This document shows, in pieces, positions 3,477 through 59,244 of a stretch of 64,000 bases of DNA. Location of the stretch: contig CBFFRP010000298.1 of the NCBI GenBank assembly GCA_965644295.1, positions 558,001-622,000 of the forward strand, in the 5' to 3' direction. A model generated the notes under the pieces. It had not been told where the DNA came from and ran no database searches. It saw only the letters and a list, made by a program, of their open reading frames with translations. A program made the translations under genes and the position numbers. This stretch comes from Paraphysomonas bandaiensis. Its lineage: Eukaryota > Protista > Chrysophyceae. Every line of letters begins with the position of its first letter. Within the stretch, counting starts at the first letter, position 1.

Positions 3477-4241
3477 TTCTGATAGTTCCAGTAACTACAA
3501 GGTAGTATATACCATAATATGTATATACATATATCACTATACGAATAATGCGATCAAGTTCATATGTAAACACTCACTTCAGACAATCAAGTGAATGACT
3601 TTGACTTCATATGAAATATATAGACATCCACAGAACACTCATGTATCAGATACTGTCTTCACTTCATAGTGGAATTCGAATACTATATCCATATATGTAG
3701 AGCCCTACATACACAGGAGTGTATGGTATGGTATACTATAGCTGTATAGCTGTACTACAACACACAAGAAGTTGTGTTAAGGAAATACTGCTGTATATGA
3801 CGTATACCATTGACTGTATTTGCGCACACTGCTTTATCCCAAAATCCTGTCGAAATCTGCGTCATTTTGTATTTTCAGATTTTCAGGTTCAGAGTTCTCG
3901 GTATCGTTCGTCCATAAAATAGGATCGTTTGTTGTTGTGAAACCAGGATAAAAATGCACCCTTTTTTTCAACAATATTCTCCACTGACACCAAAATTCTC
4001 ATAGTTTTCAAGAAAATGTAATCAAATTCTTCATATTTCTCCAATTTTTGAATTGGAGATCTTTGAATATTCCTGGTCTTTGTTTCGTCAGTTGGTTGTG
4101 GATTTGTGGTGTGGGAGACAGATCCCAACAACTGATTACGATGTCGCTGAAAAATTATACAAGAAATCTGATAGGAGCATCTCTAGAAGATTCAAATTCT
4201 ATTTGTGTAGGCATTTACATATTAACGACCTAAGAAGAAGG

Positions 4242-5473
4242 ATGAGTGATGGTGGTAGTGATTCGAAGAGTATGACCTCTTCGTTCGTAAAGAAACTGTT
4301 TGATATGGTGGAAGGGCAGTCTGAGATCATCACTTGGGTCGCCGAAGGAAAGGTGAGTGAAACCTCTATATATGAACAAGGCTGATGGATGTGATACAGG
4401 CGTTTGAAGTAAAGGATCCAAAGCGACTAGAAACTGAAATTCTTCCTATATTTTTTAGGCACTGTAGATTTCAATCGCTGGTCAGACAGTTGAACTTCTA
4501 TGCTTTCAAGAAAGTCAGTAAAGAAAGGAGCTCGTGGGTATATAGCCATGAATATTTCAGACGTGACAGACCCGAGTTACTCCACAGAATGCGGAGAAAA
4601 ACAAACAATCACTCCGCTAAGCGCAATCGCCGCGACGGTGTTTCGAAGGGAAAAACACATTTCATTTCTCAGTCTCAGTACTCCTCTGACGACAGCTCAG
4701 AAGAATCGTATGACAACGATGGTGTCAATACCAGTGGGAGTTACCACTTGACACCCTTGAATGAGCCTAATTCGGCCAGTGAGGGCTCATGCGACACTCC
4801 TAATTACAACGGATCGGGCAGTAGCTGCGACTCGGAGGGTCTCCAGTCAGACGACGAGGTAGACTACGAAGAAGTCCTGGGGAGCTGGGACAATGTACAT
4901 CAATTTTTTCTCAGTGGGGCGACAGGGAATAAAGATTCGCTCTCTTTGATGAAAGTAGAAGGTAACAGAGGTGCGGTTGACGTTCTGTGCACAACCGTTT
5001 CAGATGACACCACCGAGTCCGCGCGAGAGGCTTCTCTAAAACACCTATTGACTTTTTGCCTATCCCGCAATCCCTGGCAGGATACGCAAGCCCTATTCGC
5101 GGACATTCATGGACTGCTATCGGATAATGCTGATATGACCAATGAGCTGAACGCGTACGCCTCTGCACTGGCCCCGCCATCAACTCTTTCACTGGTGGTT
5201 CATAGGACGATGCAGCAATCCTCAGAAGTACAGCTCTCCCCATCCCATTCTGGTGATTGTACGATCGCTCCTTGTATTTTAAGGTCCAACGAAATTACTC
5301 TTGTACGCACATTTATCGCGTTTGCTCTCGCTTGCCTCCACGACGCTTGCCACAGCGAGCATGTGGTAGGACCCCCACACTTTCCTGATGGCCATTCTCA
5401 AGTAGAGGCGTACAAGTCTGCCCTTGGTATGTGCGTTGACAACTGGTCCAGCTATGCGAAAACTTGCACGTAG
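4242..5473 (+). CDS. Heat-shock-factor (HSF-type DNA-binding domain) transcription factor, 2 exons (intron 4353-4399)
   Basis: SFVKKLFDMVE...IITW|AFEVKDPKRLETEILPIFFRHCRFQSLVRQLNFYAFKKV...YSHEYFRRDRPELLHRMRRK is the HSF DBD signature; the intron restores the frame. Confidence 0.92.
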
Positions 5474-8799: not shown

Positions 8800-8956
8800 T
8801 ATACAATCGATGCGAATGACATAATCGATGCCGTTTTTTTCAGTTTATTTTTGATTCTTTATTGCTGATTTGACATACTATCAAGAATGAACCTTAAAAT
8901 CTTATACATCTTTGTACGTAGTTTAAAACAAGCATATTTACCGAAAGTATATTTAT

Positions 8957-9536: not shown

Positions 9537-10207
9537 CATATGGTTGTAGGTAGTATAGCACACGGTTAATTTCGATGTTTTGCTGATTTTTTAATTTGTG
9601 CACTGTGGACAACAGTGCACACTCGTTTTTCGTTTTGAAATAAATAACGTAATTTTTTACTTCAGTAGTCGTCCATAAGTGCTTTACTATCGTTCTAATC
9701 TGCCCTACCGCATTGTGTACAATGTACAATAGGTAGTAACACTTTAGGTACTAATAGTGTAAATAGAGACACTAAAATAAGCCAGGATAATATTCTCCAC
9801 TGTTATAGGCTAAACACAGTAATCCCGTGTTCCATATAACTACATAGTGTTGTGTTTACTACCTTTATAGTCCTTGACTTCTATATGATGTATAGACGTA
9901 TAGACAGTGAACATATGCAATATACATCATATACCATATACCACTCACATATAGTGTGTTTGTATACTATATGAACCCACAGAGAGAATATGTGCATAGC
10001 TGCTACAGGCATGAGCACAAAGAGGCGAGTGTCGTACTTTTACCAGGGTCATGTGGTGCTGTATATTACGGGCCAGAAAACCCCATGAATAGCCTAATAA
10101 TATGCAACCGTATAATCTGATTGGTGAGTGGTGTGTGTTGCGGTCATATATATAGGAGAGTTCACAGAGTCCAGCAGAAAGAATATATGGACTACCAAAC
10201 ACTTAAA

Positions 10208-10650
10208 TAGTCTCTGCGTGCTGTACGAAGCACGCAGAGTGAATATGCAAAACATATATCATACATTTAGTCCCTGTGTGTTGTATGGAAAGCACAGAGT
10301 GAACACATACCTCATATAGCACCTATATAACCCTTGTGTACACTGTGTGAAGCGCACGAAGTGAACATATACATCATATACCAGTATACCATATATATAT
10401 AGTCCTTGTGTGTTTGTGAGCTGTATGAAGCAGCAGCCAGAGTGAATATACGAAGCATATAACACACATATATAGTCCCTCTGTGTTGTATGAAGCACAC
10501 AATGAACATACTAATCATATACCACATTCATAATAGTCCTTGAGTGTTGTATAAAGTACACAGAGAAAATATACAGTGTATATACCACATATATAGCCCC
10601 TATATGTTCTATGAAGCACACAGAACGAACACACAGAACATATACCTCGT
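10208..10650. repeat. Degenerate minisatellite, about 60-72 bp unit, about 7 copies (weaker copy near 9866)
   Basis: Recurrent unit TAGTCC(T/C)TGTGTGTTGTATGAAGCACACAGAGTGAACATATAC... Confidence 0.8.
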
Positions 10651-11668
10651 ATCTAGACCTCTTATAACATCTACAATAATATATAACAGTAGAATACGCC
10701 TGGTGACAATATAACACACTTATATACTCTTCCACTCAAATATCTCATCTTCAATGCAGACGACACACACACAGTGGAGACATATATCGCAAAGATGTGA
10801 TGACCTCTGCTGAATGCTTTAATATCGACTGCAATGAGATCCCTGACATTCTTCAATCAGAGCAAGGAGATTATATCCATAAATACACTATGAATGGGAC
10901 CAATTATGAAGTAACGTCTGTCTACGGAAGACTAGCTATTGTATGTAAAGCAGTTGAATGATTATTCCCCTCAAAAATACAAATAATGAGCTTACAGGAA
11001 GTGACAACCACTCTGAGTACATCTTCAGGTTCAGGGGACCAGGAATACACCCCTCTCACTCCCTATCAACTGATATTTCAACCAGATGTCAGCGTTGATA
11101 TGACTGACCACTAGAAGCATCCATTCTTTAGTACAGATGTATTTATTATGAATGAGTATCCAAATATGATGATATTTAATGGCTTTAATGTAAGAGTTTT
11201 CCACATCCAACCCTCCCGTATCGGCATCCTTTGTATATTTTTGTTCAAAGATGCCTCTAATATTGAGACAATAATTATCTGTATTATAGTCGTAGTTGTA
11301 TCTCAGTAATATAAAAATCTCAGTAAAATATTTGCTTCAATTTATTTTCGAAAAATATGAAGCAGTCTGCCGATGCGCCCAACAAAAATAAACTGAAAAA
11401 AACGGCATGGATATGTTGGCATCGATTGGATTATTGGTATACTTCGTAGACAGTTTCCAGACATATCCATATACAGCAGTGTCAAGTACAGAGTACAATA
11501 CCAGGAAATTTCCTATACTGGTATTTGTATTGTTGTAGCTGTAGTGCTTGCGGTATGGTAGACCGTAGCGGGATATGCTGCTGTATGATGTAGCTGATGT
11601 ACTTCTATATATATCCATCACAATACTTTGCTGATACACTGAATTTCACAATACAAAATATAAGTGTT

Positions 11669-13021
11669 ATGAGTGAGAGTGATTCAATCTTTTCACGAGG
11701 GATTCCTCTCCAGCTCCTGCAATATATACGTGACCATGTTAAGGAACGTAATCCTCATTCATCGACACGAGATGTTCATCATAAGACTATTATGAAGTGG
11801 ACGAAAAACACTCAGTTATCTCTTGCAGATACGATGCGTAATCGGCCCGATATATTTAATACTGTCGTGACGCACTGTAGCACTGTGAATGTATACGTAT
11901 GTCACTGCTGGTCAGGAAACTTCTGTGATTTAATTGAGCAAATAGAGTTGTATTTCCGTAACAACTTCCCTAATTTGGATAATCCTGTGGTGTGGATCGA
12001 TATTGCAATGATCAATTTTTGGGAAGAAGACCATGTTGTGTGGTATCAATCTATTCCTGAACGTGTTCGATCTGTGGGTCATACACTACTTGTCCTTCCG
12101 AAAATAGATTTCGATGGGGCGAATGACTGTATGACACTCTCTTCCGACTGTAACTCACTATATATATTTAGCCGTACGTGGTGTCTGTTTGAATTGTTCT
12201 GTTCTGCGTTTTACATATGTGAATTCGGAATACAAGGAAGTGTGGAAGATATAACTCAACTACTGGATTCGCCACTATCAGTGAACATATCAGCTTCAAG
12301 TACTACCATGGAGGAAGACCACACCGCCTTACTCTCTGCAATACAGCTACTCGACCCAGATACAGATTTGGACTCGGCGAATCATACTGTACTGAACCTT
12401 GTTCAGGAATGGATCAGCAACGAAAAAGCCGCTCGTAGTATGCGGGCTAGGCCTCATTCTACAGATACTGACAAGGTATCAGAAGTGAAATGCTGTGAAG
12501 AGTTACTGAGTACAGGAGAGTCGAAACCTTCGAGCACTGTAGGTATATGTAGTAGCAGTGCTGAACACTGGACGACGAGAGACAGGGAGAGTATTGGATA
12601 TCCCACGCAGCCTTCAGATAAGAGCCTCAACCGCGAGGTGTTGCACCACGGTGACTCAAATGTATCATACCTAAATGCAAGTGATGCACTTGAGGGATCG
12701 CAAAGTTTTGGCGAGGTAGTGGATATGGGCCCAGGTGAAGAAGATATCGTTCTTTTCTGCTGCCCTTACGAAGAATGTCAAGGGAGTATTACCATCCCCG
12801 CGTCGCAGGTTAACTGCGGGGTCTTCCGACATGGAGTGTTCAAGCATAATGGACGACAGATACCACCCCACAGTAGTAAATGGAAATGTGATCGACTTGC
12901 TGAAATGAATGCAGTGTATGGATGTGCAAAACCATTTCGGTGTCGAAAGTGTATATCGTATATAGAGGGGTCTACAGTTGGTAAAACCGTCTACACGATT
13001 GAAAAGTGTGATTATATATGA
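11669..13021 (+). CDS. Intronless TIR/HET-like domain protein fused to a C-terminal Cys/His-rich domain resembling a giant-virus protein
   Basis: Open frame of 474 aa, probable start MSESDS. Motifs YVCHCW, VVWIDI and FSRTWCLFE; C-terminus CPYEEC..NCGVFRHG..QIPPH..CD..YGCAKPF..CDYI. Confidence 0.75.
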   Translation: MSESDSIFSRGIPLQLLQYIRDHVKERNPHSSTRDVHHKTIMKWTKNTQLSLADTMRNRPDIFNTVVTHCSTVNVYVCHCWSGNFCDLIEQIELYFRNNFPNLDNPVVWIDIAMINFWEEDHVVWYQSIPERVRSVGHTLLVLPKIDFDGANDCMTLSSDCNSLYIFSRTWCLFELFCSAFYICEFGIQGSVEDITQLLDSPLSVNISASSTTMEEDHTALLSAIQLLDPDTDLDSANHTVLNLVQEWISNEKAARSMRARPHSTDTDKVSEVKCCEELLSTGESKPSSTVGICSSSAEHWTTRDRESIGYPTQPSDKSLNREVLHHGDSNVSYLNASDALEGSQSFGEVVDMGPGEEDIVLFCCPYEECQGSITIPASQVNCGVFRHGVFKHNGRQIPPHSSKWKCDRLAEMNAVYGCAKPFRCRKCISYIEGSTVGKTVYTIEKCDYI

Positions 13022-20686: not shown

Positions 20687-22399
20687 ATTATTAGGATTCA
20701 GCTTAATACATGACAGTATCTGTGAGTTATAATGTTCAATGAAATATATCATGAACTGAATTAGAGAGAGTATCTGTTGAAGATACATAATCGTCATTAT
20801 CAGTTACACTTCTAACTATTCCGTTGTGCATGATAGTTATGTTCTATATTGTTATTCATAATTCTCACTCTACTGTGTACATCACTTTACACTCTAATAA
20901 TCATAATCATAACATTGTTTTTACTATTACAAAGATTTATTCTTTATTTGAATTTGATACAGAAATGTGATGAATAGGAACAATTGTTGTCATTTAGCAT
21001 CATAAACAAGCTGAAGACCTGCTAGTTTATACTAAAGATAAGATGATTTCTTTCTTAAATCCGAAATTGTGATTTCATGTCTACATTTTCCAGGTGATAA
21101 AAGTGTTCTACTAGGCCAAAAATACAAGTTACGAACAGGGATAAGTTGATATTACCATTATAGCAATAAAAGATTCTACAGTGCAATGGAAAAGGATTCT
21201 ACAGTAAATTAAATTTCACCCTTCACTCGACTATTCTCCATCTAAGCAAGATAATTATACAGATTGTAGACACAATAGGACAATATATGGACGCTATCAA
21301 CTAAGTCGCAGTTGATATAGAAACCACACTACAAAATATTATGACTCCTCCATACTGGCTTCTTTCTCTTTCTTGTTTCGAGAGAAGAGCTCATTTAAGT
21401 ACAATCGATTGCGCAGATCCTCGTCAATACGGTCGTCGTTCATCATAATCGCCTCGAATTCATCCGAGCATTCATTATCTGGAGTACTGGTGCAATTGCT
21501 GTCCATTTGAGAGTCCGACGAATTATTTTCATTTCTATCTTCAACTGCATTGGAGCTATCGTAGGTTTCGCTGGACTAAAATACAACATATAAGCAACAT
21601 GTCATGTGACATACGCATAATAATAACATACATTAGCGCCTGATGTGTCTCCCTCATCCTCATACTTCATCCCCTCCTTCATGCCATCAATATCATTATT
21701 TTCAGACCAGGAGCACACCATCTCTTCTCCATCCTTGCCCATATGATAGTTACCTTTCTTGACATGTTTATTTAAATCAAGTTTTCTTTTACTAACAAGC
21801 ACAGACTCTTTCGTGGCATGCTTACCACTTCCACCCTCTGAATTTGGTTCACAATACATGTGAAATAAACAATACACACCGAGTATCAAAGTCTAATGCA
21901 TATACCCAACAGAGTTAGTGTATTGTCATCTAGTTTGACAACAAGGAGTTTAAGACTTCTATTACACTGATAGCTAGCTAGCACTCCGCCCGTATATATG
22001 CATAGAGAGAGTATGTATATCATATGTACAATAAAAAAATAAGTTCAAGGGAAGAGATGGCTAAAAGTGTGGGAAATGTCACCCATATGTACCTTTACAC
22101 CATCTTGGGTGCTGTCCGTTCAAGATACAATACCTTCCCAACAGAATCCCATAGTGTGTGCTGCTGGTGATGTACTACTTATCCTTCTGGACTTCTTAAA
22201 CTTCTACAGCGTATAATAACGGTAGGTACAGTATATCCTACTTCGTATCGGCAATGAGTATCTTAGTTTTCGGAAATAAATTGAAGCAAATATCATCTCC
22301 ATTACTGTACTACAACTACGGCTGAAATACACATAATTGTTGTCTCAATATTAGAGGCATATTTGAACAGAAATATACAAAAAGGATGCCGATACGGTC

Positions 22400-56645: not shown

Positions 56646-58316
56646 TCACCACATGGAAAACTTCTCTGCACATATACTGTGACCATATTCCATATATTCC
56701 TTTTTCGAAACCATATGACTACAGATTGTACCCGCAGACAATTCCTGCTCAGCGAACCTCGCAGCACCTTTCCAGGCATAATCTGAAGGATCTGGAGGGG
56801 AGAATACCTGTCGTCAGTAATATAAATCAACAACAACACATGAAAACAGTGCCACACTCACGTTTACGCTATCAGCCCAGTGACTAGGCACAAGTGGTAA
56901 AAAATCGGATTCGAAACGGCTTCTGAAATTGGGAATGCCGGAGTTCCCTCCTGTCAGGATAACATTTCTCACACATAGGCCCGCCTCAAGCTGTTTAATG
57001 TTGTGAGGTGATAACAGAAAATATGTGCCGAATACTCACATCATGTAATCCAGCGATCGACTGGCCTGCTGCTTCAGCTATACCCGCCTGATGGATCCCA
57101 ATATCTGATGGTCTAAATAGTAGCTCGGGCACAGAAAAGCGTTCTGATTCCATGGTAAGGATCTGCTCTTTAGCTTCAAAAGCATCTCCTTCTTGTTTCA
57201 CAAAACCGCGCATCACAGTATGAAAGTCAGGCATAACGAAAAACTTTCGTAAGTACTCTTCATCTTCTTCGTCGTCACTATCATTAACTTTCACTTCATC
57301 ACCTGTGTGTGATGAGATCTTCTTGGGCACAGTCATCTCGCCTCGAAGCTTAAAGCATTTAGTGAGATCGTCCTCGAATGATGAGCTGACAAAACTCAGC
57401 TCTTCCTTCACCTGAGTGCAGCGTTACAATTCACCAGACAGTTTCAAAATCAGTAGTGGACCTGGTTGATTAGCAGAAACTCGTCCATAACATTCCACTG
57501 TCTGTAGCTCACTAATTCCTTCAGGTAATTCGTAAGAAGCTTACCACCTATATTCACTCTCTTACACTGAACACAAGCATGTTACATATTACTAAAAGTA
57601 CGGTTGGGCATTCTCACCGCATGCTTGATACACTTTCCATCCACAAATGGCATACAATGAGAAAAGGAAAACCCAGAATCAATAACTAAGCTGCATTCCG
57701 GGAAGCTCGAAGTCAGTTTCGATATTTTAGGACTCTCATTAGAAGCAGTGTGTGTGCTCTCTGTTTTCCACACTTCAGACGAACAACTAGAACTTCCAGA
57801 ACTATGGCTTGCATAATATTCGTATGCACTAAACCACGGTGCAGGCCTGCAAAGGGCAGACTGAAATCCAAATTCTTCGAACAGTACCTGTAAAGTGGGA
57901 TGAGTAAGTGACACACCGCTACAATGCAAACAGGACCTCATTCATATCAGCTTGTAGTTCATCTGGACAAAACGGTGGTACTGTGACGATGACACCGCAG
58001 CTATCTGTTGAGCTGTTCATATGAGAGGAGTCGAATATACGCTGCCATATCTATACAACATAAACCCACTAGACATACACAGAAACACACTTACATCTCT
58101 CTCTATGTTCCAATTAACCAAATAACCCCTATCGAATGGTCGAGTGAACTGTAGTTGTGATGTGTTTAATATATTCTCAATCTCATCCCCCACAAACACC
58201 TGCATAGTCTTATTGATCTTAGCTATGCAGTTCGGCATAGTCATAGGGGTCGATTCACTCGACCACCCGTATTTGACTCGATATGCTCCATTATCGAGGA
58301 TGGCTATGGGGTACAT
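56646..58316 (-). CDS. ARP6: Actin-related protein 6 (SWR1 complex), multi-exon
   Basis: [54 protein letters not shown] and [16 protein letters not shown]. Confidence 0.93.
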
Positions 58317-58372
58317 GGTGCTTGGATGTACATGTAATTGTAATGCATGGATAGTAGAAGATAGAAGAGACC

Positions 58373-59131
58373 TGTATGTATGTATGTATGTATGCATGTA
58401 TGTATGTATGTATGTATGTATGTATGTATGTATGTATGTCTGTATGTATGTATGTATGTATGTATGTATGTATGTATGTATGTATGTATGTATGTATGTA
58501 TGTATGTATGTATGTTTGTATGTATGTATGTATGCATGTATGTATGTATGTATGTATGTATGTATGTATGTATGTATGTATGTATGTATGTATGTATGTA
58601 TGTATGTATGTATGTATGTATGTATGTATGTATGTATGTATGTATGTATGTATGTATGTATGTATGTATGTATGTATGTATGTATGTATGTATGTATGTA
58701 TGTATGTATGTATGTATGTATGTATGTATGTATGTATGTATGCATGTATGTATGTATGTATGTATGTATGTATGTATGTATGTATGTATGTATGTATGTA
58801 TGTATGTATGTATGTATGTATGTATGTTTGTATGTATGTATGTATGCATGTATGTATGTATGTATGTATGTATGTATGTATGTATGTATGTTTGTATGTA
58901 TGTTTGTATGTATGTATGTATGTATGTATGTATGTATGTATGTATGTATGTATGTATGTATGTATGTATGTATGTATGTATGTATGTATGTATGTATGTA
59001 TGTATGTATGTATGTATGTATGTATGTATGTATGTATGTATGTATGTATGTTTGTATGTATGTATGTATGTATGTATGTATGTATGTATGTATGTATGTA
59101 TGTATGTATGTATGTATGTTTGTATGTATGT
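58373..59131. repeat. (TATG)n microsatellite, about 190 units with CATG/TTTG/TCTG variants
   Basis: Directly visible; fills most of the ARP6/threonine aldolase intergenic region. Confidence 0.99.
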
Positions 59132-59244
59132 AGCATATCTGGATATCTGGATATTACAAGGTCATCACATCTCCTGCATCTCACGTCGACTACTTTGCAG
59201 GCCCGATAAACCAACAAAGACAATCAAGTGAACACTTTTAGAAA

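Follow-up and report, generated by a model that had tools for sequence, protein, structure and literature searches.

A predicted TIR-like domain fused to a giant-virus-type Cys/His module in a chrysophyte gene, a candidate virus-triggered effector

Introduction

Why would a protist protein end in a module that is typical of giant viruses? The question is raised by a gene within a 64,000-nucleotide stretch of the genome of the chrysophyte Paraphysomonas bandaiensis (assembly GCA_965644295.1, contig CBFFRP010000298.1, positions 558,001 to 622,000), the whole of which we refer to as the window. An initial annotation of this DNA had read the gene as a TIR/HET-like effector whose sensor had been replaced by a captured viral domain serving as an integrated decoy. 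Here we report that the gene belongs to a family of cellular fusion genes, in which an N-terminal domain with a TIR-like predicted fold is followed by a linker and a C-terminal Cys/His module whose relatives are overwhelmingly proteins of Nucleocytoviricota. Our preferred explanation, held tentatively, is an effector triggered by virus. Protist defence against giant viruses is little understood, and this fusion family provides a concrete, sequence-defined candidate.

One open reading frame spans both domains

A single uninterrupted open reading frame (ORF) covers window positions 11597..13021 on the plus strand and comprises 474 aa in the ORF listing. We favour the Met at 11669, which is residue 25 of the 474-aa form and gives a protein of 450 aa, as the start, because relatives align from around residue 7 of this shorter form; the stop codon occupies 13019-13021. 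The intronless frame, the three N-terminal motifs YVCHCW, WIDI and RTWCLFE, the linker and the C-terminal module of ~90 aa were all confirmed as the initial annotation had described them (Table 1). A chance ORF is ruled out, since this is the second-longest ORF within the 64-kb window (GC content 40%) and keeps all family-invariant residues of both the N-terminal domain and the C-terminal module. The linker could not be aligned between relatives and falls outside both confident structure models; it is probably disordered. No second copy of the gene lies elsewhere in the window. The only database protein for the locus is a EukProt model, P0003 (window 12308-13021, 237 aa).

The C-terminal module belongs to a family of small giant-virus proteins

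A word-indexed search with the module retrieved a pair of stand-alone proteins, 88 and 98 aa long (46% identity), one of them encoded on a gene-dense contig next to a PIF1 helicase. In IMG/VR, a pattern scan built from a three-sequence alignment recovered 70 module loci (34-55% identity; tblastn E 3e-21 to 6e-11), all of them on Nucleocytoviricota contigs, many of which are named GVMAG and the longest of which reaches 406 kb. The module was a stand-alone ORF in 70/70 of these loci (66-111 aa, median 84). Their flanks encode, among others, the major capsid protein of nucleocytoplasmic large DNA viruses (NCLDV), an intein-bearing family-B DNA polymerase and RNase H, and a 214-aa form of the module adjoins an NCLDV poly(A) polymerase and an AEP primase. 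An exhaustive search returned 718 proteins at E ≤ 0.001; 142 of those in hand consist of the module only (63-266 aa). Viral clusters number in the hundreds and are divergent, spanning 22-52% GC, as opposed to a handful of cellular clusters.

Structure comparison led to the same family. When the AlphaFold2 model of the module (pLDDT, the predicted local distance difference test, 92.7) was compared with predicted viral structures in BFVD, the only significant match was A0A5K0UAF1 of Yasminevirus (prob 1.00, E 6.7e-07, 36% identity), an uncharacterised protein of 100 aa from an isolated member of the Imitervirales. The initial annotation, recalling a small stand-alone protein common in Nucleocytoviricota, was thus right about the module. 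Outside the viral collections, the module had no Pfam or PDB sequence match, and neither a profile search nor a fold search of the PDB gave anything significant; across 105 module members, Pfam returned only weak, sub-threshold matches to zinc-ribbon families and DUF7560. A phage genome collection contained no match. Among 185,579 prokaryotic species genomes there were two, both on 3-kb contigs of metagenome-assembled genomes (MAGs).

Over 206 module sequences, column shares of 0.85-1.00 are reached by six Cys positions and by one or two for His, a pattern from which two zinc sites are predicted. All invariant and near-invariant positions of the viral family are kept in the window module, including the CPxxxC pair near its start (Cys codons at 12761 and 12776), although this first Cys pair is spaced two residues wider than in the viral proteins.

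Two observations on individual copies may be added. The family-B DNA polymerase beside one viral copy contains an intein (L017:6198-10043). The only prokaryote-labelled copies (L078, L079 and P0016) sit on MAG contigs of 3-7 kb assigned to an unclassified bacterium and to Cryomorphaceae, and most likely stem from giant-virus contigs that were mis-binned into bacterial MAGs.

The N-terminal domain has a TIR-like predicted fold and is found in cellular proteins

The AlphaFold2 model of the N-terminal domain (pLDDT 85.8; pTM, the predicted template modelling score, 0.86) shows a helical extension at about residues 14-63, followed by a core of alternating strands and helices (beta-alpha-beta-alpha-beta-alpha-beta). 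In a PDB fold search with this model, TIR-containing entries made up 24 of the top 50, and the matches include the TIR domains of SARM1, Caenorhabditis elegans TIR-1, RPP1, SPARTA, RPPT-TIR and AbTir. Across the 18-member domain family, H79, W109 and D111 are each present in 18/18, N116 in 17/18, R169 and W171 each in 16/18, C172 in 17/17 and E175 in 16/17, the remaining member having Asp. On the model, E175, the candidate catalytic Glu, lies on the helix following the third core strand.

Sequence profiles placed the domain in no known family. Pfam and PDB sequence searches with the whole protein and with its halves gave nothing usable. At E ≤ 10 the window protein had no match to Pfam HET (PF06985), and the 18 family members had none at E ≤ 1. 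The sole Pfam TIR match was that of TIR_2 to one sub-fragment of one relative, at an E of 0.0066 that did not pass the cut-off. A PDB profile search gave the bacterial TIR structure 3h16 at E 0.91, in a weak alignment from block 1 to block 2 that sets block 1 against the first-strand region of 3h16. Run against the 18 members, the PADLOC defence models returned nothing meaningful. Where the initial annotation had named a TIR/HET-type domain and looked to TIR_2 or HET matches for support, a probable TIR-like fold and the conserved His, Trp-x-Asp and Arg-x-Trp-Cys-x-x-Glu elements were recovered; membership of the Pfam families was not, and the fold match itself is marginal, as detailed below. 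We consider the domain to be, probably, an extended TIR-like fold that is a member of no curated family. A Pfam match of the window protein to Cadherin_5 (E 0.02-0.08) was rejected as noise.

In a word-indexed search of 5.8 billion clusters, the domain was a near orphan, the sole protein recovered being P0003, the EukProt model of this ORF. Exhaustive and profile searches yielded a small family that comprises, besides the fusion proteins, one 170-aa fragment and a set of proteins with tetratricopeptide repeats (TPR). In the latter (P0013, P0089 and P0154-P0159), one to three copies of the domain stand ahead of TPR_10/TPR_12 arrays of the NPHP3 type, an arrangement that the initial annotation had anticipated for protists. 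P0089 (L077:2408-6127) has three tandem copies followed by a single TPR array, and P0013 (L076:94-6528; 2144 aa) combines two units of domain plus TPR array in one protein. No relatives of the domain were found in IMG/VR using a profile from a tighter alignment, nor in the flanks of the module-bearing viral loci. Its distribution is cellular only.

The fusion is conserved in divergent cellular relatives

At least four divergent metagenomic relatives carry the same fusion next to cellular genes, a recurrence that the initial annotation had suggested looking for. P0004, P0005, P0006/P0153 and P0007 (445-514 aa) are single ORFs with 28-31% identity to the window protein over the N-terminal domain and the module alike; P0008 represents that fusion gene too, truncated by a contig end. 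The contigs of these relatives encode a histone deacetylase, a Na/Ca exchanger, a thioredoxin and DUF747, and share no synteny with the window. Because the fusion is kept as a single ORF in relatives with cellular neighbours, it represents a real host gene family as opposed to a viral insertion or an artefact, and we have very little doubt that the architecture is that of a genuine protist gene. A literature search turned up no account of this particular fusion.

In three of the relatives (P0004, P0005 and P0006/P0153; alignment A6, columns ~720-860), a long, Lys/Glu-rich low-complexity insert interrupts the module. It sits between the KPFR-type motif and the terminal Cys-x-Tyr-Ile, where the window copy has a short insert only.

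Table 1 Coordinates of the fusion gene, its parts and one viral counterpart
Feature	Position	Strand	Description
Whole gene	11669..13021	+	Intronless, 450 aa plus stop; in-frame ATG further upstream at 11597 gives 474 aa
N-terminal domain, predicted extended TIR-like, putative effector	11669..12418	+	Residues 1-250
Motif block 1, YVCHCW	11894-11911	+	Residues 76-81, on first core strand (strand 75-78 in the model)
Motif block 2, WIDI	11993-12004	+	Residues 109-112, end of second core strand (strand 107-110)
Motif block 3, RTWCLFE	12173-12193	+	Residues 169-175, start of helix 170-181 after third core strand (138-142)
Linker	12419..12742	+	~108 aa (about residues 251-358), S/T/E-rich; sequence and length not conserved among relatives
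C-terminal Cys/His module	12743..13018	+	~90 aa; homologous to stand-alone giant-virus proteins
Putative zinc ligands of the module (start positions)	12761, 12776, 12815, 12830, 12869, 12887, 12923, 13007		
Viral example, locus L030	Kinase 4075-4866, module 5001-5201	Same strand	

Scattered cellular copies and a probable repeated capture from viruses

Module copies also occur in two cellular proteins of other architectures. P0128, a hypothetical protein of the ciliate Pseudocohnilembus persalinus, carries the module with an N-terminus of unfamiliar type and is encoded among cellular genes; its gene is intron-bearing, since the genomic span exceeds the coding length. P0058, from a EukProt eukaryote transcriptome, joins a CBM_20 domain to the module. 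By sequence distance, the nearest neighbours of each are viral ORFs from IMG/VR, the clade of the window module being distant from both, and the host-fused modules form a group of their own (mean distance 0.47 within, versus 1.20 to others). The scatter of the ciliate and CBM_20 copies near viral ORFs agrees with the module having been captured more than once from viruses. Judged by this distribution, the simplest reading is that hosts took the module several times independently from a large pool of viral copies, and we hold this to be rather more probable than its converse. GC content and GC content at third codon positions (GC3) of both domains are host-like and separate them neither from each other nor from host genes; given that the module has taken on the composition of the host, its capture would be old.

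A model of a virus-triggered effector

We propose that the gene encodes a cytosolic two-part protein, in which a TIR-like effector would be connected by a disordered linker to a zinc-binding module derived from the giant-virus protein pool. The captured module would occupy the position of a sensor, because in paralogous families TPR arrays follow the same effector domain. During infection, it could associate with its viral homologue, or with a partner or ligand of the viral protein, and this association would bring several TIR-like domains together. Once clustered, these might cleave NAD+ or a related nucleotide by means of the conserved Glu, and cleavage would keep the virus from replicating, at the expense of the cell. 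The virus-to-host capture is inferred from distribution, the enzymatic activity and the activation by clustering from analogy with TIR systems. Published work supplies context: TIR-like domains that are divergent but retain a conserved Glu are able to act as NADases (bioRxiv 10.64898/2026.09.21.753143), and microalgal resistance to a giant virus has been connected with TIR genes (PMC12489294).

As a whole, a virus-triggered effector is the model we prefer, albeit with a confidence that stops short of belief; a sensor-effector function in antiviral defence we regard, a shade more cautiously still, as a serious possibility. A sharper version, in which the protein would be an innate antiviral receptor free of any nucleotide-binding leucine-rich-repeat (NLR) scaffold, with a TIR-like death or NADase domain fused to a domesticated giant-virus protein as homotypic bait, seems to us doubtful. 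On that version, repeated capture by unrelated eukaryotes, as in the ciliate and in the CBM_20 fusion, would mark a recurrent point of conflict between host and virus. If the sensor interpretation holds, the protein would constitute a minimal effector-plus-bait receptor, in which virus-derived sequence is reused for immunity in a microbial eukaryote, and would offer a first functional handle on a widespread, anonymous family of giant-virus proteins that is linked to a deoxynucleoside kinase.

Comparison with known systems

The best structural matches of the N-terminal domain are the TIR NADases (SARM1/TIR-1, RPP1, AbTir and the TIR domain of SPARTA). They share its predicted alternating beta-alpha core and likewise have a conserved Glu on the helix after the third strand; the domain also stands at the effector end of a multi-domain protein, and its paralogues carry repeat-type sensors. 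However, TIR NADases comprise ~140 aa, whereas the window domain of ~250 aa is enlarged by the helical extension at its N-terminus and by a long loop that leads into the Glu helix, and no significant sequence-profile match connects the two.

Fungal HET (PF06985) is a cell-death domain and remote TIR homologue of unknown mechanism (PMC10890737). Like the window domain, it is N-terminal, measures about 200-250 aa and is combined with variable C-terminal recognition domains, as in het-B, where a lectin fold sets specificity. The window family has three conserved blocks, which, as the initial annotation noted, may correspond to those of HET in order and general character. HET, however, is fungal, whereas the window family is protist and metagenomic and escapes the Pfam HET model, so that kinship to HET is a lead and not a result.

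A possible parallel is TeTIR, the extended TIR-like domain of STAND proteins of the TEP1/NWD/NPHP3 type, with 200-350 aa, a catalytic Glu and a conserved Cys (bioRxiv 10.64898/2026.09.21.753143). TeTIR goes together with TPR repeats of the NPHP3 type, and Pfam TPR_NPHP3 matches were obtained for relatives of the window protein. Yet a NACHT ATPase is said to follow TeTIR directly in every case (bioRxiv 10.64898/2026.09.21.753143), whereas the window protein has neither NACHT nor NB-ARC. No TeTIR structure was among the fold matches of the N-terminal domain, the TeTIR crystal structure possibly being missing from the PDB copy searched.

Plant NLRs with integrated decoys (RRS1-WRKY, RGA5-HMA; PMC4246468) likewise carry an extra domain at the recognition position of an immune-type protein. 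But there the integrated domains copy host targets of effectors and reside in paired NB-LRR proteins (PMC4246468), whereas the window module resembles a viral protein and is joined to no nucleotide-binding domain. Since relatives of the module are overwhelmingly viral, and it is no copy of a host target, the term ‘integrated decoy’ of the initial annotation does not apply in its plant sense. The small Nucleocytoviricota proteins themselves (Yasminevirus A0A5K0UAF1, GVMAG and IMG/VR ORFs) are homologous over the entire module with the same Cys/His pattern; they differ in being stand-alone, whereas the window module forms the C-terminus of a host protein among cellular genes. By analogy, the closest parallel to how the gene would work is a TIR/HET-type effector whose recognition domain has been exchanged.

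Weighing the model against alternatives

Several observations weigh against the virus-triggered effector. The best fold match of the N-terminal domain, SARM1, is marginal (prob 0.99, E 0.035, TM ~0.46 normalised to the target); no match in the PDB fold search attains an E of 0.001, and 0/18 family members are recovered at E ≤ 1 by Pfam HET or TIR. Neither the window protein nor the TPR-bearing relatives P0013 and P0089 contain an NB-ARC or NACHT P-loop NTPase, and the absence of these domains sets the protein apart from NLR and STAND proteins. P0003 starts at an internal Met within the last helices of the N-terminal domain and omits most of it; as this model covers the C-terminal 237 aa, the public annotation may under-call the gene. 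The module is present in cellular genes too and is therefore not exclusively viral, and the fusion clade received 29/200 bootstrap replicates on 84 columns of an unrooted tree; on both counts, there is room for transfer from host to virus. Of the proposal in the initial annotation that a captured viral module had taken the place of a sensor, the sensor position and the viral affinity held up, whereas exclusive viral occurrence did not, and the direction of transfer is judged from distribution, with low bootstrap support for the fusion clade. Lastly, among the viral loci whose neighbours we inspected (L004-L069), 29/65 loci and 10/30 sequence groups have a deoxynucleoside kinase upstream of the module and on its strand, with kinase identities down to 26%, a hint that the viral protein may serve metabolism and not structure.

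This linkage is central to the main rival, in which the module would bind a nucleotide, nucleoside or nucleic acid in hosts and viruses alike, and the fusion would be an enzyme of nucleotide metabolism or signalling in which the module serves regulation or targeting, with no sensor function for pathogens. RNase H, an endo/exonuclease/phosphatase and PIF1 helicase are also frequent beside the viral module (a rhodanese and a ~920-aa protein without Pfam match being the other recurrent neighbours), and the weak zinc-ribbon matches of the module point the same way, as do its other partners, CBM_20 in P0058 and the different N-terminus of the ciliate gene. Furthermore, TIR-type enzymes share mechanism and fold with nucleotide N-glycosidases such as DNPH1 and MilB (bioRxiv 10.64898/2026.09.21.753143). 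However, no match in fold or sequence links the module to a known nucleotide- or nucleic-acid-binding domain, and the kept gene order may be plain synteny among related giant viruses. The other partners of the N-terminal domain are TPR arrays of NLR-like type, pointing to surveillance; the low identity among fusion members reflects fast evolution which, together with the patchy distribution, is typical of immune genes. We rate shared biochemistry as rather unlikely. Were it true, the viral zinc module would be tied to nucleotide chemistry.

A second alternative reverses the direction of transfer: the module would be an old eukaryotic domain and the fusion ancestral, giant viruses having taken the module from hosts once or more, such that its viral affinity would reflect amplification in viruses and not origin. 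The unrooted tree with its poorly supported fusion clade, the intron-bearing ciliate copy and the fully host-like composition of the window module are in keeping with this view. It is at odds with the imbalance between viral and cellular clusters, and with cellular copies that do not cluster together but each lie closest to viral sequences. In addition, viruses as a rule carry the module on its own, whereas no stand-alone cellular copy was seen among proteins with a traceable source. Overall, this direction appears unlikely.

The module might also act by interference, competing with its viral homologue for a partner, in which case the TIR-like domain would be a non-catalytic scaffold or localisation domain. 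Co-opted viral genes are established as dominant-negative restriction factors in animals, and retention of every invariant residue of the viral family would suit a competitor. The strict conservation of H79, W109, D111, C172 and E175 in both fusion and TPR-linked members argues instead for an active site of the N-terminal domain itself, and we deem interference improbable.

That the gene belongs to a giant-virus insertion in the host genome, or arose when chance or the assembly joined two genes, is scarcely credible and was rejected in both forms, even though P0003 spans the last 237 aa only and repeats lie just upstream, because no other window ORF resembles the module-bearing viral loci and no cluster of viral hallmark genes surrounds the locus, both domains are host-like in GC and GC3, the N-terminal domain is absent from viral contigs, and the same continuous fusion ORF recurs in divergent relatives on cellular contigs.

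Surroundings of the gene

Window genes with a Pfam identity encode HSF, CRAL/TRIO, protein kinase, TCP-1 and actin (fragments), all of them ordinary cellular genes. For TCP-1 as well as the protein kinase, the coding sequence is broken up into neighbouring ORFs that short gaps separate, which identifies the window as eukaryotic and intron-bearing and agrees with the intron-rich genome described in the initial annotation. The ORFs directly flanking the fusion gene had no match in a Pfam scan, and an Rfam scan of the 64-kb window returned zero matches.

Several repeats lie upstream. Just upstream of the gene lies one arm of an inverted repeat of ~50 nt, whose partners are 2.5 kb apart and 87-97% identical (8801-8853 and 11383-11431), and a 147-nt stretch nearby is repeated in reverse orientation 11 kb off (11216-11360 and 22261-22397, 80% identity). 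These pairs may be dispersed repeats or fragments of the kind left by miniature inverted-repeat transposable elements. About 1 kb upstream of the gene, positions 10173-10646 hold a degenerate tandem array of about 5 copies of ~60-nt units (61-77% identity), which accounts for spurious Tyr/Cys-rich ORFs in this region. Towards the far end of the window, long ORFs overlap on both strands at 58017-59231, with a GC skew of 0.30 over 58-60 kb and only a short actin-like match, suggesting low-complexity or repetitive sequence.

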